From positions 79,112,001-79,176,000 of the forward strand of contig NC_043001.1 in the NCBI RefSeq assembly GCF_006345805.1: 64,000 nucleotides of DNA, in the 5' to 3' direction. The notes beneath the pieces were generated by a model. It was given only the letters and a program-made list of their open reading frames with translations. It was not told the origin of the DNA and did not search any database. Shown here piece by piece: positions 304 to 53,685 of the stretch. The translations under genes and the position numbers were made by a program. The stretch is from Octopus sinensis. Lineage: Eukaryota. Position 1 is the first letter of the stretch; every line of letters starts with the position of its first letter.

Positions 304-708
304 AAGGCGGCGAGCCACAAGAATCGCTTGTACACTGAACGAAATACTTAGCGGTATTTCGCCTGCCGTTACCTTCTGAGTTCAAATTCCACCGGAGTCG
401 ACTTTGCCTTTCATCCTTTCGGGGTCGATTAAATAAGTACCAGTTACTCATTGGGGTCGATATAATCGACTTAATCCGTTTGTCTGTCCTTCTTTATCCT
501 CTCTGTGTTTAGCCCCTTGTGGATAGTAAAGAAATAGGTATTTCGCCCGTCGCTACGTTCTGAGTTCAAATTCCGCCGAGCTCGACTTTGCCTTTCATAG
601 TATTAGGTTCGATAAATTAAATACATATTGCGCACTGGAGTCGATATAATCGACTGGGCCTCTTCCCCAAAATTTCAGGCCTTGTGCCTATAGTAGAAAT
701 GATTATTA
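304..708 (+). mobile_element. SINE A dimer: full A1 copy (304-536, LINE-type tail) followed by a headless A2 copy (537-708)
   Basis: First unit ends TCTGTGTTTAGCCCCTTGTGGATAGTAAAGAAATA. Second unit restarts at GGTATTTCGCC (537-547), which duplicates 353-363, and ends AGGCCTTGTGCCTATAGTAGAAATGATTATT. Confidence 0.85.
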
Positions 709-1585
709 AGGAGATGGAGTGGTACAATCGTTAACAGGCAGAGCAAATTTCTTAGCACCAGTTCGTCCGTGTTTGCGTTCTCGGTTCAAAATTTAACTGA
801 CGTCGACTTTGCCTTTCATTCTTTCGGAGCCGACAGAATAAGTACCACTTGCTCATGGGGTCGATGTAATCAATTAGACCTCTCTCCCAATACTTCAGAT
901 TTTGTACATATAGTAGAGTTGATAATTAGTGACGCTAGTTCAGTACGACAGACAAAATGCTTAACGGCATTTTTTCCTCTTTACATTCTGAGTACAAATC
1001 CCATCGATGTCGACTTTGTCTTTCATATTTCCAGGTCGATAAAAAAGGGTACCAATTGATTCTTGAGGTTGGAATAATCGGAAAGGCCCCTCCACAGAAA
1101 AAATTTCAGAACTTTTAACATTTTTATTACCCACAAGGGGCTAAACACAGAGGAGACAAACAAGGACAGCAAACGGATTAAGTCGGTTACATCGACCCAA
1201 GGGCGTAACTGGTACCTAACTTATCGACCCCGAAAGGATGAAAGGCAAAGTCGACCTCGGCGGAATTTTAACACAGAATGTAACGACAAACGAAATACCT
1301 ACTTCTTTACTACCCACAAGGGGCTAAACACAGAGAGGACAAACAAGGACAGACACACGGATTAATCGATTATATCGATCCCAGTGCGTAACTGATACTT
1401 ATTTAATCGACACCGAAAGGATGAATGGCAAAGTCGTCATCGGCGGAATTTGAACTCAGAACGAATCGGCAGACAAAATACCGCTAAGCATTTCACCCGG
1501 CGTGCTAACAATTCTGAGCAGCTCACCGCCTTCAGAAAGTTCAGAAAAAATTTCAGAACTCGTGCCAAGAACAGAAATGATTATT
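709..1585 (+). mobile_element. Two older, diverged SINE A copies in tandem; the second is split by the minus-strand insertion at 1114-1541
   Basis: Degenerate GTCGACTTTGCCTTTCAT body motifs near 815 and 1010. The tail of the second copy resumes at 1542-1585 after the duplicated target. Confidence 0.7.
1114..1541 (-). mobile_element. SINE A1 dimer (full copy plus headless copy) with a 19-bp target-site duplication
   Basis: CAGAAAAAATTTCAGAACT is identical at 1095-1113 and 1542-1560. Both units end in the TAGCCCCTTGTGGGTA tail. The internal junction reads AAAGAAGTA|GGTATTTCG on the minus strand. Confidence 0.85.
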
Positions 1586-7159: not shown

Positions 7160-7575
7160 CGAGGTAGGTGCTAAAACATTTCCTGGCTTTAAGGGTATCG
7201 CAAAAGGCTTAGTTGGAAGCACAATCTTCCCCGTTTTTATACAGGGCTTAGAAAAAGTTTGAGTTAAAAGAGTTTCCTATGTTTCCTCGGTGTTTGTAAA
7301 TATGTAGTAGAGGCGGTGTGTTAGTTGAGCTGTCGATTTATACACCGTAGCATCTTTTCACATACATGGGCGAGCCGAAATGTTCCTGGCTTTGAATGAA
7401 AGAAAATACGGGAAGATCAGTTAATTATGATTTTATTCAACATATTCCTCTCTCAGAGTCACACATATTGCTGCAATCCTTCAGTTTTTCTAATCCCTGA
7501 AAAACCACTCGGACGTTTGGGCCTGCGACAAGGTCTTTGATGACACTCTTAAAAGGCCAGGAACTTTTCACCACT
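7160..7575. mobile_element. Mariner-derived MITE: partial forward copy (~7160-7258) and a reverse copy (~7372-7575)
   Basis: TA|CGAGG..GGTGCTAAAA..TTCCTGGCTTT terminus and the reciprocal AGGCCAGGAACTTTTCACCAC. The interior resembles a decayed mariner C-terminus (G L.KL..R..KC....G.YVE). Confidence 0.6.
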
Positions 7576-7880
7576 TTATCATAAGAATCTTAAATGAAGC
7601 AATTTTGAAATGTCTTCCTAATCTTCTTTGTGCCACTAACAGATTAGATTTGGAGAATTCGCGATAATCTCTTATGCTCTCTCTGCGCGAAATCGAGTAC
7701 ATAATGCACATATGATCATAAGTACAGATGAGATATTATATCTATGGTACAAGAGCTTTAAGTTTCGCACGAATTCTTTGTAAATAAGTATATGTGCACG
7801 TGTGTGTGTTTGTATATGTACATGTTCGTGTATGTGCTTACCGTTCTATATATGTTAGTCTTTTACACGGGTACGTGTAT

Positions 7881-10596: not shown

Positions 10597-11453
10597 ATAT
10601 ATATATATAGTGAAGAATGGTAAGTTCTGTATACATGTGGTATAGGTATATAAGAAAGAAATGAAAGTGAAGAGTCACAGGAAGATTGTGCAGTAAAATT
10701 TATTATGATATTAGGATCATATTACCTCGTTACATTTTCGCAAATTATATATGTACCGGTTTCATGTTAAAAAGGATTGTTAACTTATATAGAGAAAACT
10801 TTTTTACAGTCAGTAGGACGCCATCTTTGAAAAACGTGAACAGAGATGAAGCAATAGGTCAAGGGGAGCAACTCTTATTTTTTCATGAAGCACTTCAGTG
10901 TTTTTGCGGTACATCACGTAGTTGAGACAGTCGGTCTTCGACAATGGAGCTGTGATGAGCTGTCAAAACGAAGATCGTTTAGGGACTGCCTTGACGTCAG
11001 CCCGAATGACGGTGTCAGAATACCTTCAGCCTACGGTTTCGAGGTTTCTCACAGGCGTTCATGGCTGAGGTAATGGTACAGGGCCAACGATCATCATAAA
11101 AAAAGTGTCCAACTTGCTAGATGAACTGCAGTATTCTTGGAGTCACTGAACAATTTGAATGATTTTATTTTCCCCTTGATGCAGCTGAAACATTAATCCC
11201 AGAGGTTTCCAATACAACTTCATCTCTGTGCACAAAAGAGCTTGCAACGTATAGAATGTTTGTAATTTGCACATGGCTCTGTACCGTACACGTACCCAAA
11301 ACAACCGCTAATCTTTTCATTTCTTGTGTCAATATTCTATCTGTCATGGAGATCTGAAAGAAACTGAAACTGTTTCATTGCTTTGGAAACAGTAATGTAT
11401 ATATATAATTCAAACCCAGTGAACAGCAATGACGATACCGGTTTGACTTTGAA

Positions 11454-11685
11454 AATGCGGCGAGCTGGCAGAATCGTTAGAACGTCGGGCGAAATGCTTA
11501 GCGGTATTTCGGCTGCCGTTACGTTGTGAGTTCAAATTCCGCCGAGGTCGACTTTGCCTTTCATCCTTTCGGGGTCGATAAATTAAGTACCAGTTAGCAC
11601 TGGGGTCGATATAATCGACTTAATACCTATGTCTGTCCATGTTTGTCCCCTCTATGTTTAGCCCCTTGTGGGTAATAAAGAATTA
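11454..11685 (+). mobile_element. SINE A1, full-length, with a 14-bp TSD
   Basis: GGTTTGACTTTGAA at 11440-11453 and 11686-11699. Confidence 0.9.
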
Positions 11686-12158
11686 GGTTTGACTTTGAAT
11701 CTCCCTAACAATTCAAAATAATGAATTCAATTATTCTTAATTTTACCACAGTTCATCTAATTGTATTAATTTATCACTACTTTTCATAAAAAAATAGCGC
11801 CTTTACTTTTTTGATATTCAATGTGCATTTTCGCTCTTTTTCTTCTTACATTCCCCATATCTTTTCCACGTGTAGTTTCAATTTTCTTTTACCTTTACCT
11901 TTACCTACACTCACTCTTGCACACATATATATGTATCCGTGTAATATCGATTTCAAATTTTGGCACAAGGCCAGCAATTCCGAAGGAAACGACTCTAGTG
12001 CGTAACCTAAGTGGAATTTGACCTCAGAATGTTAAGACGGACGAAATGCTGCTATGTATTAGGACCTGTGGGCTAACGATTTTACCAGCTCGCCGCCGTT
12101 GTATTAGTTGTAATATCAAGAAAGAATTGCACGATGTGCTAAGTCTAAATTGACGCAA

Positions 12159-22493: not shown

Positions 22494-22593
22494 TAACCTT
22501 TATTCTTTTATTCTTTTATCTATTCCAGCCATTTGATTGCGGCCATACTTCATACTCGAACACAAACACAAAGGAGAGTATATCCACTAAGAG

Positions 22594-22823
22594 GCGGCGA
22601 GCTGGCAGAAACGTTAGCGCGCCGGGCGAAATGCTTGGTGGTATTTCGTCTGCCGTTACGTTCTGAGTTCAGATTCTGCCGAGGTCGACTTTGCCTTTCA
22701 TCCTTTCGGGGTCGATAAATTAAGTACCAGTTACGCACTGGGGTCGATATAATCGACTTAATCTGTTTGCCTGTCCTTGTTTGTCCCCTCTGTGTGTAGC
22801 CCCTTGTGGATAGTAAAGAAATA
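22594..22823 (+). mobile_element. SINE A1, full-length, with a 15-bp TSD
   Basis: TATATCCACTAAGAG at 22579-22593 and 22824-22838. Confidence 0.92.
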
Positions 22824-23166
22824 TATATCCACTAAGAGTTTTTTCCTATGTTCAAAAATCCCCCCACCCACTTTTTCCGTGACAAGGTCAGAGTTTGGAA
22901 TCTTTTAAACAGATGGATGACATATCATTTAACCGAATTAGCCCTTCATTTACTCCCCAAATGTCTTGCCACTAATGCTGCATTTGGCCGTATCACACGA
23001 TTCAACTTAACTGCAGCATATACAAAAACTATGCCATTTAAATCCCGAGCAGTGCCTGGATTTCCTATTTTATATGTCATACATACATATACATACATAC
23101 ATATATATATATAATATATTAAATATATATATATATATATTATATATATAGATAATTATATTAATC

Positions 23167-29536: not shown

Positions 29537-29749
29537 AAGGTGGCGTGTTGGCAGAATCCTTAGCACGCGAGGCAGAATACTTAACGGTGTTTCGTCCATA
29601 TATCCTTTCTGAATTCAAATTCCGCCGACATCGCTTTCGCCTTTTTTTTTTCGAGGTCGATAAAATAAGTACCAGTCGAGTACAGTAGTCGATATAATAG
29701 ACACACTCCTTTCCTTGAATTTTCTGGCTTTGTGCCAAAATCTGAAACT
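29537..29749 (+). mobile_element. SINE A with the third tail variant (A3, TGGC-TTTGT-GCCA AAATCTGAAA)
   Basis: Family A head and body followed by CTGGCTTTGTGCCAAAATCTGAAAC. Confidence 0.7.
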
Positions 29750-31847: not shown

Positions 31848-32052
31848 GAGCTGGCAGAATCGTTAGCACACCGAGCAAAATGGTAATCGGCATTACGTTC
31901 GTCGCTACGTTCTGAGTTTCAAATTCCACCGAGGTCGACGTTGCCATTTATCCTTCGGGGTGGGTAATTAAATACCAGTGAAATGCTGGGATCAATATAA
32001 TCGACTAGTACCCTCCCCCACATGTTCAGGCCTTGTGCCTATAATAGAAAGG

Positions 32053-38241: not shown

Positions 38242-38504
38242 ATGCATTTTAGAAGGGCTACAACGGCACAGATTTATTATACATACAAGCATTCACAGAT
38301 ACACACACACATACAGAGATAAATAAATAGATACATGCATACATACATGCATAGATACATACACACACATATACATACGTACATACATTCTCGCATTCCC
38401 GAGCATCAAACTAAAACATCTGCTTGTTGTTTATACACCTGTCTTCGTATTTTGTTTTTCTGTAAATTTCAAATTGATAAATAGGTACATAGATAATTAA
38501 ATAG

Positions 38505-38865
<361 letters not shown>

Positions 38866-39159
38866 ACTTTTTATTGTAGCCACACAGGGCTAAACACAGA
38901 ATAAAAATGGACGAAATACAATGTAGAATTTTTTCTTTTCGAGGTGGGATGGGTGGGGCAAAAAAAAAAAAAACGTTTGATCAATAGGAATCTGTGGGTT
39001 GTGTGGTGTATAAAAAAGCAATATATATATATATATATATAAGGTTCACAGTTTAGGTGTAGCCTTGGAAAGAAAAACCTACAAAAAAGACCAAGGTCTC
39101 CTCAGACAATTCGAAAAAAAACATGAGTAAGTCGCCTTACTTCGCGTTGTCTCTTTTGG

Positions 39160-42100
39160 TTACAGATTTATGCTTAAAATAGTGTCGTCTTTCATACTGA
39201 CCATTTTTGCCACTTTTACCCACTTTTTATTAAAACATTCGTTCGATAAAGCCTCCCTCTCTATTCTCATCCTCCTTTTCAAGTGGTACTTGAAAAAGTT
39301 GACGAGAGACTGACCAGAGAGGAAGGTGTTTGTTTGCAGTCCTTTCAAACGTGTCCATCACACATTCTTTCGCCATAGCCATCAGCGTAACGAAAACCGT
39401 TTTCCCTTCCCGTTTAAAGGAAGGTGGTGGAACAATACTCACGATAGACTCGGACGATAGGCGAGCCCGACCTACACGTGACAACAGCTGTTCGACGAAG
39501 GACCACAGCTCTGAAATATCTGGACACTGCACGAGTGCGTGCAGAACGGCTTCGTCGCTCTGACCGCATCTCGAGCAGGTCGGTCCGGTGATGGTTTTCG
39601 AACCGTGTCTGTAGCTCTTCTCTCGAACAGGTAGTGCGTCTCGATAGCACTGCCAAGCCAGGGATTTCTGGAAGTTATCCATAGGCCCCGGCCCGAACAT
39701 GGTCCTGAACAGGCGGGTTAGGAATTTCTCGTCGACGCCCAGGTTTGCCCCGAGTGTGTCGTCGGACCTCCCCTCCACTAGTCCTCTATAGAACGCTTTA
39801 GTCGTTTGTAAGTTGCACAAGTTTAACCCCGGTCGGCAGAGCTTCTGTAGAGCTTGGCGACACTCTCGGTGCCAATCGCCCAGTTTCGGTCTCTTTTTGA
39901 TCCACGTTTGCAGTTCGGTCAGTGAGACGAGCTGCGGGAAGTCGCGCCTCACAAACGGCGCCCACACCTGTTCACCGTCGTTGACGAAGTTCCAGAGATG
40001 TCGCAGTCTCAGCGCATGTCTGCGCATCATCAACCACGGCATGCCCAGTCCTCCATTCAACGGATGTTGACAGCAAATGGACTTCCTCACCATCGGAACG
40101 CCACCCTTCCACAGGAAGCGGAAGAGTATGCGTTCCAGTTTGTTGATGGTGGCGTCGGGACAAGGTACGACGGTCAGGCGGTAATCGATGACGGATGCGA
40201 TGTACGCGTTCGCCACCTCCGCCCGGCCTTTTAGAGACAGCTTTCTCTCGGCCCATGTTTGGCTGAGAGCGACCACTCTACTCGTGATCTCGTCCCAGTT
40301 CTTATCCATTTGGAGGTCCGGACTGAACCAGACCCCGAGCAATTTAACCGGTCCGTCCGTCCAGCGTCCCACTACTGAGCCGCAGTCGGACGGCATGGGC
40401 TTGCTTCTCCAGGTGCCGAGTAGCAAACCCACTGACTTTTCCGGGTTAATCTTTGCTCCCGTCACCGCTTCGTATTTTCTTAGTGTCTCGCCTATCATCT
40501 GGATGTGTTTGTCGCTCGACACTATGACGGTGACATCGTCCGCATATGCCGACACGCTCGTCCCGCAACCCAGTTCCCGTGGGATGCCCCTCAGTGTCGC
40601 CAGCTTCCGCAGTAGCGGCTCGAGAGTCAATACATACAGAAGCGCCGACAGGGGACACCCCTGACGGACCGAACGCGTGATGTCAAACGGTTTCGACAGG
40701 TGACCGTTCACCCGAATCACCGATCGGATGCCGCTATACAAGGCAGCGATCCAACCGCGGAAGATGGGACCGAAGCCAGCCGCCCTGAGGACGGCCGCTA
40801 AGGACCGATGGTCGACCCGATCGAAGGCTTTAGACTGATCCAAATTTATCAGCGCCCCACCCATGCCAGGATCCTTAACTACCCTGTCCACAATGTAGCG
40901 CATCAGATGGAGGTTGTCATGTATGGTTCTGCCCGGCACGGCGCATGTTTGCGCCTTGTCAACTAGTTTCTTGATGACAAGCGCCAACCCCTCGGCTAGC
41001 ACCTTGGCCAAAATTTTCAAATCTGCGTTGAGCAGAGTGATGGGCCTGAAATTATCTATGACGTCCCCCTTGTTTGGGTCTTTCTTAATCAGTGCCACTG
41101 CTCCTCGCTTTACAAAAGCAGGGATACTCCCGTTTTGCTGCGAGTTGCAGTAGACAGCTGCCAAGAGGCCTCCAAACAAGTCTGGCATATGACAATAAAT
41201 TTAGTAGGGCAGACCATTGAAGCCTGGTGACTTGTCTCTCGCGCAGGCCTCCATCGCATCCTGTACGTCCGCAGCTGTGATAGGCCTTTCACAAGTCTAC
41301 ACCTCTCTTGCTGAGAGTCGTGGAAAGGCATGCAGGTAGGCACTAAAGTCTACTCTGCGTTCTGACCCACCGCTTGACCCAAACAGTTGGGTGAAGTGTT
41401 GTTGAAAAGCCCCACACATCCTTTTAGGCTCGAGCAATTCGGGCACCTGTTCATCTGTAAGAGACTTGATGGTGGCTCTGTTGCCTCGTTGCGTCTCCAC
41501 CACTCGGGCCTCTTGGGCGGCTCCAACTCCTTCGTTATTCAGAGCACGCATCCTGGCTCTGACAACGCATCCTTCGTGTTTGGCGCTGAGGTGTTGGTCG
41601 AGGGCCAATCTCGCTGCCAGTACGTTGGACGCGATGCCAGTTCTAAGTGCCTCTTCTAAAACCTTAACTAAGTCTCCCTCTATTCTATTTCGGTCTAATG
41701 CTAGGGCTTTACTGTATCTGACTGATTCTGCTTTAATTGCTTTTTTTTAGGGCATACCACCATCTGTTGTTGATGATGGTACCCGTCAAAGCTCTCTTAA
41801 CTAATGTGCTGATCCGGTCTCTGTAAACCTGTCGTCCTGTAAAAGACGCGTTCAGTTTCCAGTAACCAGGACCCTGCCTATGTGTCTTATCTAAGTCAAG
41901 TGTACAAGTCACAAACTTGTGAACTGTGTAACTGACTATATGAAATTGTGGACAACCTACACTATTTTTATCTATTGTCCTACAGAATACTCTATCTAAG
42001 TATGATCTGGACGACCCGATACGGTTCCTCCATGTCCACATTGGCACATTCGGGTGGTCCAGTCGGTACCTGTCAGACAGTTGGAAACGTCTGAGCAGGT

Positions 42101-42599
42101 CTTTGAGGCATTTGCATCCCCTTCTATTGCTATCTCTGCCCACGTAGTCTAGATGCGTGTCCAGGGTGGCATTCCAATCCCCCACTAAAAGTAAAGGACG
42201 AGACGTTCCCATGAAAGACTCTAGACGTCGAAAGAAATCTGGTCGGCCTGTTAAGGACGGTGCATAAACTGTTATCAGTCGAAAAGCACACTCATTGCTG
42301 CCATCGACATCCAAAACGACCAGCCTACCCTCCGGGTCTAGGAAAATTGCTCTTACTTTGAGGTCCAGACTCTTCCGGAGAAGCACCGCGGTGCCACCTC
42401 CGCCCATTCTCGGTAGACATGGAGAAAAATAAATGTTGAAATGTGTGCCGAACATGTGCTGGAGTGCCCACGAGCTGTGGAGTTTGGTCTCACTGATGGC
42501 TATGATATGCAGATTTAGTGACTTGATATCATTTAACAGGTAGCCTTGTTTCCAAGGCGACCCCAAGCCACGTACATTTATACTGCCTATTTTGAGCAT
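39160..42599 (-). pseudogene. Tx1 ORF2: APE endonuclease, reverse transcriptase and C-terminal zinc finger (~1,146 aa when reconstructed)
   Basis: IGSINVRGL, ISETK, LVGDWNA, SYLDR (APE); KSPG.NGLPY*IY, FRPITLLNADLKILAK, LDQSKAFDRV, VRQGCPLS, AYADD (RT); CSRC...H...C. Lesions: +1 in the A8 run at 41741-41748, TAG at 41297-41299, TAA at 41201-41203, and a frameshift near 39358. Confidence 0.93.
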
Positions 42600-42665
42600 G
42601 TTCCTATAAAAAATTGTTTTACACACGAAAAGAAAGTGCAAAAAAAGAAAGAGAGAGAGAAAAGG

Positions 42666-44795
42666 TTACTTGTTGTCCGAAAGTCCTTTGTTTTTTACCT
42701 CACAGTCTTCTCCCATGAGGTTTTTATACAGTTTCTTTGATAAATATTTTTGAAATCTCCCTACTGCATCAGGGTAGAGAGATTTCAGGGTGCTGTGTGT
42801 ATTCTGTGTTACATGTATTATTTTAATGTGTTGTGGTGGTGTTGTGCGTGGGTGGTTATTTGTTTTTATGTCGTTTTCAGTTATGTTGGTGTTTGACCTA
42901 ATGTATTCCATTAGGTCGTGGTTGTTTGTGTTCATGGCTATCAACATTGTTGGGGGGTTTGATGATGGTGTGTTTGTGTTGATGTGTTCGTTTTCTGTGG
43001 ATGTTTTTGTTTCGGGAGTGGTGAATCTTCCTGCTTTGTCTGTTATCTTTTGTATTCTTTTTTCCCCCTTTTCTCCTCCCCCCTGTGGCTATTTGCCAAT
43101 CTTCTGTGTCTTCTTCATCTAATGACAAGTCAGAGGAATCTGAGAGTGGGAGGGGAAAAGTATTGGGATCTATTTTAGACTGTGTTGATTTTGTTGTTGG
43201 TGTTGGTTGGTGAGCGTTAGGTTGTGGTGCATGGGGTTTTGGAGGTGGGGTGTGGGTATTTTGTGTTTGAGGGATTGTAGGTATTGTTGTGTTGTTTGGG
43301 GTGTCAGTTTTGTGGGGATTTGGAGTGGTATTGTTTCTTCATTTTCGATGCTTGTCTTTTTGGTAGATATTCTTGGTTTGGGAGTTGGTTTATTCTTGAT
43401 TGTTGTTGTTGGTGATCTTTCTATTCTTGCTGCAGTTGGTGGTGTTGTTTGGTTGGTTGGGTAGGTTTGTTTTTTGTTAATTTTCTGTGATTAGTCCTGT
43501 TAGTGCAAACTGTGGTGTTGGTAGTAAAGCTGGCTTTTTTGTTTTTTCCGGCAGCTGTTGTTGTTGCTGTTGTTTTCTTGCGGCAGATTTGCAATCTTTT
43601 TTTTAGACGTTGCTCACTGCCGCATATGTAGCAACGTGGTCTTCTGCCATCGACGACCACATACAACATGTGGTTTTCTGATACACATATCTGGGTGGGT
43701 ATTTTCTTGATAACATCTTGGTTGATGTGTAGTAGAAATTCTACTCTTTTTCCCACCCAGTTTTTGTGTTCCGTGACCGTAGTTTGTAAAATTGTGAAAT
43801 CTTCTATTTCCACACATATGGCTGTTGCTAGCCATAGATTATTCGCTATTTTTGGAACATTGTTTAAAGTGATCTTAGTCACTTTCTGTCCACGATAGCT
43901 TGGTATTAATGTGAGTCCATCTGAATGAAGAGTTAGCGTTGAGAAACGTTTTGCTAACTCTTCAGTGTGGAAAACCACTTGTATATGCGCGAACTTGTTC
44001 CACCATTTCACATACTCTTTGAAATTCCAGATGGGTTTCAAGCATTTTTCGATTTAGCTTGTGTTAGCCTTCTCTGGACTTTTTGTTTTCTTATTAATTA
44101 TTTTATATATAATAGTTCATTTTTTTCATTTTCTAATATTTGTTGTGGTATGTTTATTTTTACCATGCCATCTTCTTTTGTTATTAAAACTTTGGTATCT
44201 TTTATCTGTTGTGCACTAATAGATACTGTTGTCTTTTTTCTTTTATCACCTCGGCGAAATTTGTTGTTGTTTTGTTATTGTTGTTGCTGGTGGTGATGTT
44301 GTTGTTGGCTGCAGTTGGTAAAGTCGGTGAATTTGGTTTGATTGTGCAAGTAGGAAGGGGTGGAAAAATACTTGCATAGTTTGTCCCTGCGTTTGAGCAG
44401 CTTTCGTCAATTTGTTTGGTGGTCACAGTCTTTTGTTTATCTCCTTCAGTTCTTGGTGTTGGAGGAAACAAGGTCTGAACGGAATTGTTGTTGTTGTTGT
44501 TGTTTTTGTTGTTGGTGTTGGCGGTGGTGTCAGTGGCAGAAGAGACAGCCGTGGCAGCAGATATCGAAATGGTGGGGCAATTGTTGTTATTCTTGTTGTC
44601 ATTGTTATTGTTGTTGTTGTTGGTAGTTGAAGTAGTGGATGTGGTGGTGGTGGTGGTGGTGGTGGTGGTGGAGGCGGTGGTGGTAGCAGTAGTAGTCTCG
44701 TTGTTGTTGTTGTTAGTGGTGGTGGTGGTGACATGACTGTTACCGCAAGTGGTTGCAGCGTTCACCACCACGTCACTCAGGTTTGTCTTTGTCAA
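42666..44795 (-). pseudogene. Tx1 ORF1 (gag-like), fragmented
   Basis: Low-complexity Thr/Asn N-terminus; HIQVVFHTEELAKRF (RRM-like); CYICGSEQRLKKDC after removing one A from the A8 run at 43597-43604 (CX2CX4[H>R]X4C knuckle); Lys/Asn/Thr-rich C-terminus. Confidence 0.75.
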
Positions 44796-45101
44796 ATGTG
44801 TGTGCGGGCATAAGTTCTTTTTTCTCCTAGCGTTTCAAGTCTAGGAAAATGCTGGACCATAAAGGAACGCGACCAGCGTTCTACAATAACATTTCTCGAC
44901 ATTTTTTAATGTCGAGAAGAAAAATACGCAAATTAAATAGGGTTGAAACTGCCCCTAGGGGCGAATTCCTCCCTTGGAAAAGCACTCAAACGAAAGTTGG
45001 GTGCCTTACACACCTTATTTACAAAAATGTACACAAAATATGGGCTATAAATAGTCAAAATAAACGATTACCTTCGGAGCCGAGGCAACAACACGTCAGT
45101 C

Positions 45102-45147
<46 letters not shown>

Positions 45148-45177
45148 CAGATAGATAGATAGATAGATAGATAAAAG

Positions 45178-45260
<83 letters not shown>

Positions 45261-45284
45261 GGATAGATAGATAGATAGATAAAC

Positions 45285-45370
<86 letters not shown>

Positions 45371-45380
45371 ATAGATAGAT
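45102..45380. repeat. (GATA)n array, 5' flank of the Tx1 element
   Basis: Visible directly. Confidence 0.95.
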
Positions 45381-53536: not shown

Positions 53537-53547
53537 TATATATGTAT

Positions 53548-53683
53548 TCCGCCGAGGTCGACTTTGCCTTTCATCCTTTCGGGGTCGATAAATTAAGTAC
53601 CAGTTACACACTGGGTCGATATAATCGACTTAATCCGTTTGTTTGTCCTGTCTGTGTTTAGCCCCTTGTGGGTAGTAAAGAAA

Positions 53684-53685
<2 letters not shown>
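53548..53685 (+). mobile_element. 5'-truncated SINE A1 with a probable 11-bp TSD
   Basis: TATATATGTAT at 53537-53547 and 53686-53696. The context is low-complexity, so the TSD is less certain. Confidence 0.8.

Follow-up and report, generated by a model that had tools for sequence, protein, structure and literature searches.

What mobilises the short interspersed elements (SINEs) of octopus genomes is the question raised by a stretch of 64,000 nucleotides (nt) from Octopus sinensis (NC_043001.1, positions 79,112,001 to 79,176,000; here called the window, to which coordinates refer), in which a long interspersed element (LINE) of the L1 group and the commonest SINE around it, termed A1, end in closely similar sequence. 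In O. vulgaris ~11.6% of the genome is SINE sequence (PMC13282606), SINEs account for ~40% of the repeats of octopus (PMC8967140), and their expansion in octopus is lineage-specific (PMC13282606, PMC8967140); a tie to an L1-group LINE would name the likely engine of that expansion. Comparison of the window with related elements makes it probable that an L1-group LINE lineage is the stringent partner of octopod SINEs, the two being connected by a shared 3' hairpin tail.

The LINE features that bear directly on the shared tail are as follows (ORF, open reading frame; UTR, untranslated region).
38866-45100, minus strand: L1-group LINE, full-length but decayed, 6235 nt; ORF1 and ORF2 of relatives map along it by tblastn.
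38866-39229, minus strand: LINE 3' UTR, 364 nt, homologous by alignment to the 3' UTRs of the relatives L002a, L002b, L003, L005 and L006.
38866-38903, minus strand: LINE 3' tail common to SINE A1, TTCTGTGTTTAGCCCTGTGTGGCTACAATAAAAAGT, from alignments and a match to an nhmmer tail profile (38903-38865, E=5.8e-7).
38887-38900, plus strand: 14-mer GGGCTAAACACAGA, identical in LINE and A1 tails.
38877-38892, minus strand: LINE hairpin, with 5' arm TAGCC (38892 to 38888), loop CTGTGT (38887 to 38882) and 3' arm GGCTA (38881 to 38877).

Read on the minus strand, positions 38900..38866 are TCTGTGTT-TAGCC-CTGTGT-GGCTA-CAATAAAAAGT, followed by (TATC)n. The claim of an earlier note on this DNA, that LINE and A1 have 14 consecutive nt in common, is borne out: GGGCTAAACACAGA occurs exactly in the A1 tails at 502 (minus), 1138 (plus), 1321 (plus) and 53651 (minus), and with one mismatch in those at 11651 (minus) and 22789 (minus). 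When up to two mismatches are allowed there are nine matches where 0.3 are expected, seven of the nine being at the 3' ends of elements. Global alignment of the last ~36 nt of the window LINE with A1 gives 27 matches in 35-36 positions; the shared module is thus ~35 nt long, and weaker similarity may reach ~45 nt. The 5' half of the window LINE tail (TTTAGCC) is as in A1 and the 3' half (GGCTACAATAAAAAGT) is nearer to other LINE tails than to A1, a half-and-half arrangement such as would be predicted if the A1 tail descended from an octopus-lineage LINE subfamily.

The relatives of the LINE bear on whether the tail is its own. The closest by protein are from Argonauta hians and from octopod-like metagenome-assembly contigs (64-74% amino acid (aa) identity), with nucleotide identities to the window LINE of 74-77% for L001 and L003-L005. 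The DNA downstream of the ORF2 stop codon was compared in the retrievable close relatives, the contigs of L001, L004 and L005 stopping before the tail. Four further family copies carry the tail, two in A. hians (locus L002, at 7247-7285 and 7614-7651) and two in octopod-like metagenome contigs (L003, L006), the shared ending being yCTGTGTyrGCC-CTTGT-GGCY-AATAAAGAAAT, ~240-360 nt past the stop codon. The termini are ...TTCTGTGTCAGCCAGGTGGCTAAGAAAGAAAT in the long Argonauta copy, ...ATTCTGTGTCGGCCCTTGTGGCTAATAAAGAAATC in a 5'-truncated Argonauta copy consisting of 3' UTR only, and ...GGGCCCTTGTGGCCAATAAAAGAAATC, then (ATT)n, in L003; L006 has a degenerate version. A CCCCCCTAYTGGGGATTTCT-like box is common to the 3' UTRs of the window LINE and its relatives, and the relatives' 3' UTRs can be aligned from the stop codon, via this box, to the tail, with no SINE head or CORE segment upstream. 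Because they align through to the tail in this manner, the tail reads as intrinsic to the LINE family and not as a fused SINE remnant. The earlier note had raised the possibility that other copies end differently and that the tail is such a remnant; the four other LINE copies end alike and have no SINE body.

On the alignments, the tails of LINE and SINE change together from one species to another. The Argonauta LINE tail ATTCTGTGTCGGCCCTTGTGGCTAATAAAGAAATC and the tail of a local CORE-SINE, TTCTGTGTTCGGCCCTTGTGGCTAATAGAGAAATC (both in L002), match at 33 of 36 positions; either of them matches the window A1 at 28-29 of 35-36, below their mutual figure, and cross-species LINE-SINE comparisons give 28-29 of 34-36. 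With the tail profile, six or more additional tails are recognised in the L002 locus (12 kb), three of which end SINEs with a CORE-like body, one with a target-site duplication (TSD), the other three being on a different, less clear SINE-like body.

The tail contains a short hairpin, which in the window LINE has a stem of 5 base pairs (bp) and a 6-nt loop, is present in both minimum-free-energy and centroid folds, and is homologous to the GGCC-CTTGT-GGCY hairpin of other LINE copies. The SINE hairpin was earlier given as TAGCC/GGGTA, a pairing that has to be replaced, as it contains a G-G mismatch; the actual A1 structure is GCCC-CTTGT-GGGT, with 4 bp including one G-U. The stem-loops and the sequences that follow them are listed here by element.
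SINE class A1: GCCC-CTTGT-GGGT, followed by ARTAAAGAAATA.
SINE class A2: AGGC-CTTGT-GCCT, followed by ATAATAGAAAGG(ATT)n.
SINE class A3: TGGC-YTTGT-GCCA, followed by AAATYTGAAAY.
Argonauta elements and L003: GGCC-CTTGT-GGCY.

Ten hairpins in the window have a GC-rich stem of 4 bp and a YTTGT loop, where shuffled sequence gives 1.1, and nine of the ten are SINE 3' tails; these nine fall into three classes with stems that are different yet in each case complementary. Across 23 individual tails 91.3% of stem cells are paired (65.1% when shuffled; 0 of 500 shuffles as high) and the covariation score is 0.545 (0.148 when shuffled; again 0 of 500), values that represent ~3-4 independent stem variants because copies within one SINE class are related. 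When the 3' partner is shifted by one, two or three columns, pairing falls to at most 43.5%. Double changes are seen in three of the four stem pairs, while TTGT and the next G are invariant in all 23. An earlier hand-picked set of 16 tails gave 87.5% paired cells, compared with 72.3% when shuffled. It is probable that different stem variants pair different SINE classes with different LINE subfamilies.

The motif extends to three distant LINEs, which have TCGGC-CTTGT-GCC(A) near the 3' end, the rest of the 3' UTR being unalignable; in their tails a longer spacer separates the motif from an AATAAA downstream.
L128: from the cuttlefish Acanthosepion pharaonis, 37% aa identity.
L008: 44% aa identity, resembling L128.
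L129: 43% aa identity.
LINE 3' ends with the hairpin are thus five octopod and three distant, these being all the retrievable copies of the group. Decapodiformes have very few SINEs (PMC8967140), which argues that the motif is LINE-borne; within coleoids it is likely to be old. The L129 tail (TTTTTCGGCCTTGTGCCAAATTTTTC) resembles that of A3 SINEs and the (ATT)n end of the L003 LINE resembles the A2 end, so several pairings of LINE subfamily with SINE class may exist.

The coding region of the window LINE, which locates it among LINE clades, consists of the following.
43421-44041, minus strand: ORF1 remnant (tblastn with ORF1 of the relative L007, E=1e-6), including an RRM-like region and a degenerate zinc knuckle (RCYICGSEQRLKKRL) at ~43993-43580.
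41745-42596, minus strand: N-terminal apurinic/apyrimidinic-type (APE) endonuclease domain of ORF2 (Pfam Exo_endo_phos, 3e-14).
39230-41188, minus strand: open part of ORF2, with reverse transcriptase (RT; Pfam RVT_1, 3.5e-31; zf-RVT, 2.6e-5) and a C-terminal CCHC motif (CSRCGQSDEAVLHALVQC).
A frameshift near 41746, evident from tblastn frames and translation, separates the endonuclease frame from the RT frame, and two in-frame stops (41203-41201 and 41299-41297) lie just upstream of the open part. Matches of the L007 ORF1 itself to RRM_1 and zf-CCHC are weak and sub-threshold (Pfam); zf-RVT is above its cut-off in the relative P0005 (Pfam). The best match to ORF2 among solved structures is human L1 ORF2p (4e-34), R2 proteins following at ~1e-15, and an N-terminal APE endonuclease, RT and C-terminal CCHC in ORF2, with a separate ORF1, are all found. 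Because human L1 ORF2p is far the best match among solved structures and the domain architecture is APE-RT-CCHC, the window LINE is assigned by homology to the L1 group. The LINE clades named for recently active insertions in O. vulgaris are RTE, Dong-R4, CR1, L1-Tx1, Hero and R2 (PMC13282606), among which L1-Tx1 alone fits the architecture; Tx1 is, by this elimination, a candidate label only. The 5' part of the ORF1 region (44250-44740, minus strand) is a long (ACC/AAC)n-type low-complexity stretch encoding T-/N-rich sequence.

On the SINE side, a single A1 copy used as blastn query finds 18 SINE-related segments in the window, six of them with an A1 tail. Alignment of the six gives a consensus of ~231 nt, ending ...CTCTGTGTTTAGCCCCTTGTGGGTARTAAAGAAATA, from which four copies diverge by ~5-10% and a fifth by 11.5%, the value for the 5'-truncated sixth being inflated by misaligned flank. 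Copies of A1 and of the other classes are located as follows.
22593-22823, plus strand: full-length A1, tail at 22783-22823; 15-bp TSD TATATCCACTAAGAG at 22578-22592 and 22824-22838.
11454-11685, plus strand: full-length A1, tail at 11645-11685; 14-bp TSD GGTTTGACTTTGAA at 11440-11453 and 11686-11699.
1114-1530, minus strand: dimeric SINE, a full A1 (1530 to 1300) plus a monomer from ~49 (1299 to 1114), with A1 tails on both; 19-bp TSD AGTTCTGAAATTTTTTCTG around the whole dimer (1530 to 1114).
306-703, plus strand: dimeric SINE, A1 (306-536, tail at 497-536) plus a monomer from ~49 with an A2-class tail, hairpin at 677-689.
53546-53685, plus strand: 5'-truncated A1 with an A1 tail.
32028-32052, plus strand: A2-class tail AGGC-CTTGT-GCCT ATAATAGAAAGG, then (ATT)n; other A2 tails are at 677 and 57529.
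29725-29748, plus strand: A3-class tail TGGC-TTTGT-GCCA AAATCTGAAAC; another A3 is on the minus strand from 11973.

The A1 duplications, previously put at 11-19 bp, can be read as 14, 15 and 19 bp. No LINE or SINE copy seen has a poly(A) tract, each ending at a defined terminus, ...GAAAT(A/C), at a TSD or a microsatellite, and a canonical AATAAA is present inside the conserved tail of the window LINE (38866-38876) and of the LINEs L002, L003, L128 and L129. The TSDs and the missing poly(A), despite AATAAA, fit a stringent target-primed model. The central segment of A1 (...TTTGCCTTTCATCCTTTCGGGGTCGATAAATTAAGTACCAG...) appears to be akin to the CORE domain as found in MIR. In both dimers the second monomer begins at the same internal position (~49, GGTATTTCG), and each dimer is flanked as a unit by a duplication, of 19 bp (1530-1114) and, ambiguously, of 10 bp (306-703). 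The dimeric family appears to exchange tails, since the terminal tail is of class A1 in one dimer and of class A2 in the other.

Four marks of a stringent pair are present: homologous 3' ends, an intrinsic tail, a stem-loop with compensatory changes and a defined terminus without poly(A). The putative recognition module at the 3' end of the LINE RNA comprises a CUUGU loop on a short, GC-rich stem, ~10-12 A-rich bases with AAUAAA, and a defined terminus, ...GAAAU(A/C); octopod tRNA/CORE-type SINEs bear the same module as their last ~35 nt. In the proposed mechanism the SINE would be transcribed from internal RNA polymerase III (pol III) boxes. The LINE ORF2 protein, whose normal ligand would be the same hairpin on its own RNA, would bind the SINE tail in trans. 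The target would then be nicked by the APE-type endonuclease, reverse transcription would begin at the defined terminus instead of a poly(A) tract, and insertion would be accompanied by a 10-19 bp TSD without poly(A). Binding by the ORF2 protein, trans-mobilisation of the SINE and the choice of a living subfamily as the driver of A1 are what we infer from the shared module. The earlier note proposed both that the shared tail marks a stringent partnership and that this Tx1 family, or a relative, mobilises the SINE. The first proposal is supported by the intrinsic tail, by the matching of LINE and SINE within a species and by the compensatory stem changes; as to the second, a shared-tail partnership fits, but the window copy is not itself the exact source of the A1 tail.

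Several points weigh against such a partnership, or against the part played in it by this copy. With one frameshift and two in-frame stops the window LINE is inactive, and its loop, CTGTGT, differs from the CTTGT of SINE tails; because of these two features the driver would be a relative and not the window copy. The A1 stem, GCCC/GGGT, occurs exactly in no LINE copy seen. The octopod LINE tails available are five and the distant ones three, and the independent stem variants are likewise few. Single-sequence folding gives z-scores of +0.5 to -3.3, the short hairpin being weak alone. Neither ARAGORN (window) nor Rfam (window, four loci and one SINE copy; gathering thresholds for the window and loci, an E-value threshold for the single copy) finds a tRNA or other RNA family, SINE heads included, and the pointers to pol III transcription of the SINE are its A-box-like (TGGCAGAATCG) and B-box-like (GAGTTCAAATTCC) motifs. 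To these are added the extent of the LINE survey, which covers this window and a few loci, and the presence of AATAAA within the conserved segment of all LINE tails, possibly as a polyadenylation signal; these last two points each bear on a different explanation of the shared tail.

The first such explanation is that the true partner of A1 is a LINE of another clade (RTE, CR1, L2 or similar), the L1-group LINE sharing or having borrowed a short motif. The shared stretch is indeed short, CORE-SINEs elsewhere are paired with L2, CR1 and RTE (PMC3747384, PMC5786205), and RTE, CR1 and Dong-R4 elements are abundant and recently active in O. vulgaris (PMC13282606). By contrast, the L1-group LINE is the only autonomous element recognisable in the window, the hairpin is in every retrievable L1-group copy, including families at 37-44% aa identity, and the Argonauta LINE and SINE tails are almost identical (33/36); a partner from another clade is therefore considered unlikely.

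The second, a little less probable again, accepts that the tails are homologous but has them kept for 3'-end formation (AATAAA with an upstream hairpin) or RNA stability, SINE mobilisation being independent of the tail. Several A1 copies have AGTAAA in place of AATAAA, as if the signal were dispensable in a pol III transcript. Against a role in 3'-end processing stand the lack of poly(A) on LINE and SINE copies and their defined ends; moreover, nothing would oblige SINEs to retain a hairpin for pol II processing, yet three classes keep the stem, through compensatory change, and an invariant loop. That the LINE tail is a SINE remnant, as the density of SINEs in the window (18 segments) makes plausible a priori, or that the similarity reflects chance or low complexity, is very improbable and is in effect excluded by the 14-mer statistics (nine found, 0.3 expected, seven at element 3' ends) and by the tail being intrinsic to other LINE copies, which in other species end alike without a CORE or head upstream and to which the 3' half of the window LINE tail is closer than to A1.

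Partnership of an L1-group lineage with octopod SINEs thus remains the preferred reading, and a broader version can be put forward tentatively, with rather more reserve than conviction: one ancient coleoid L1-group lineage, recognising a GC-stem/CUUGU-loop hairpin stringently and with co-evolving stem variants of this one module, may lie behind all the major octopod SINE classes (A1, A2, A3 and those of Argonauta). Were this so, the SINE expansion, which amounts to ~1/10 of octopus genomes, would have been driven by L1/Tx1-type elements, and no stringent LINE-SINE system of the L1 group would have been described in animals before this one.

LINE-SINE pairs with a common tail have long been known, and the octopus pair would add to them an animal case in the L1 group. 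The nearest precedents are the stringent L1-clade pairs of maize (LINE1-1_ZM with ZmSINE2 and ZmSINE3) and Chlamydomonas (L1-1_CR with SINEX-3_CR) (Ohshima 2012, PMC3472496). In these the conserved last ~45-80 nt of the L1 form a hairpin that, as in octopus, is shared with the SINE, varies by compensatory substitution in the stem and keeps certain bases of the loop or its flanks. They differ in being from plants and green algae and in having poly(A) ends; the octopus case has an animal host, no poly(A), a CUUGU loop and several SINE classes with different stems. The stringent model was proposed for one maize/sorghum L1 lineage and for the Chlamydomonas L1, and L1-clade examples in 2012 were three plant/algal SINEs among 58 pairs (PMC3472496). 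With an octopus pair, the few L1-clade LINEs believed to be stringent would include one from an animal, which would be relevant to the question of whether the L1 group was stringent ancestrally.

The experimental model for such recognition, as given in PMC4176376 and the work it cites, is provided by eel UnaL2/UnaSINE1 and zebrafish ZfL2-1/ZfL2-2, in which the ORF2 protein binds a 3' stem-loop and, as in octopus, LINE and SINE have the tail in common and poly(A) is absent ('TX1' in PMC4176376 is the name of a mutant protein, not the clade). These systems belong to the L2 clade and their tails end in short repeats, e.g. (TGTAA)n, whereas the octopus pair is known from sequence alone. For work on retrotransposition and RNA binding, the octopus pair would offer a small RNA element open to testing, made up of a 4-bp stem, a CUUGU loop and a defined terminus. 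Mammalian L1 with Alu/B1, a relaxed type, resembles the window LINE in belonging to the L1 group, with an APE/RT/CCHC ORF2 and TSDs of 7-20 bp, but is poly(A)-reliant and has no 3' sequence in common with its SINEs. Known partners of CORE-SINEs are L2 for MIR, CR1/L3 for MIR3 and RTE for Mar-1, so a CORE-SINE with a tail of the L1 group would be a pairing of a new kind. Octopus SINEs have been annotated as tRNA-Core or tRNA-Deu (PMC8967140), and OR1 and OR2 (Ohshima and Okada 1994) are cited as octopus CORE-SINEs in PMC4824008 and PMC4758252.

The belief, expressed in the earlier note, that the pair is undescribed agrees with the papers searched, the entries of Repbase, Dfam and SINEBase and the 1994 OR1/OR2/OK sequences lying outside that search. 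Octopus repeat studies (PMC13282606, PMC8967140, PMC9115989) report L1-Tx1 LINEs and tRNA-Core, tRNA-Deu or unclassified SINEs and name no partner; a 2013 review (PMC3747384) has no octopus LINE-SINE pair; and a literature text search for the tail sequence returned unrelated primer matches only.

The flanks of the LINE raise the separate matter of insertion site. Its junctions, read directly, place it between two microsatellite arrays found by Tandem Repeats Finder.
38476-38865, no strand assigned: (GATA)n / (GACA)n array adjoining the LINE 3' end.
45102-45380, no strand assigned: (GATA)n array adjoining the LINE 5' end, in the same orientation.
As (GATA)n-type arrays are only ~2% of the window, this location suggests either that the LINE inserted into a microsatellite, which would liken it to Tx1, or that 3' repeats served for priming. 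The flanks of the Argonauta copies do not support a general targeting of microsatellites; unlike the window copy, all SINE partners and the Argonauta LINE copies are at unrelated sites. The Tx1 clade (Xenopus Tx1L and microsatellite- or snRNA-gene-specific relatives; Kojima and Fujiwara 2004, as cited in PMC3472496 and PMC13295347) consists of site-specific LINEs. The likeness to it is in the L1-group placement, the position within a (GATA)n array and the head-to-tail tandem of L008; the difference is that the SINE partners, flanked by ordinary TSDs, are scattered over unrelated sites, which argues that the machinery is not strictly site-specific. In L008 (337-10169) the LINE is repeated head-to-tail with a period of 7547 nt and is similar to the cuttlefish LINE of L128; Rfam finds no RNA gene between the tandem copies.

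Elsewhere in the 64-kb window a search for a second fragment of the same LINE family found none, and Pfam gives no match for any of ten other ORFs with a length of 150 aa or more. The window is very rich in microsatellites, with 56 Tandem Repeats Finder rows at a score of at least 100.

A protein-pattern scan of a metagenome contig collection, built on an alignment of the ORF2 C terminus, gave no confirmed relative. A LINE-biased 15-mer, TTCTGTGTTTAGCCC, gave 119 stretches there, which are taken as chance matches because none carries the tail by nhmmer; octopod DNA is absent from this collection. The database entry P0006, a protein of 466 aa sharing 63% identity with the window ORF2, is titled 'MAG: zinc-binding domain-containing protein [Herbaspirillum sp.]'; it probably represents part of a cephalopod LINE that was binned with a bacterial genome. 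The contigs L003-L006, from JGI and ENA metagenomes, are octopod LINE DNA too.

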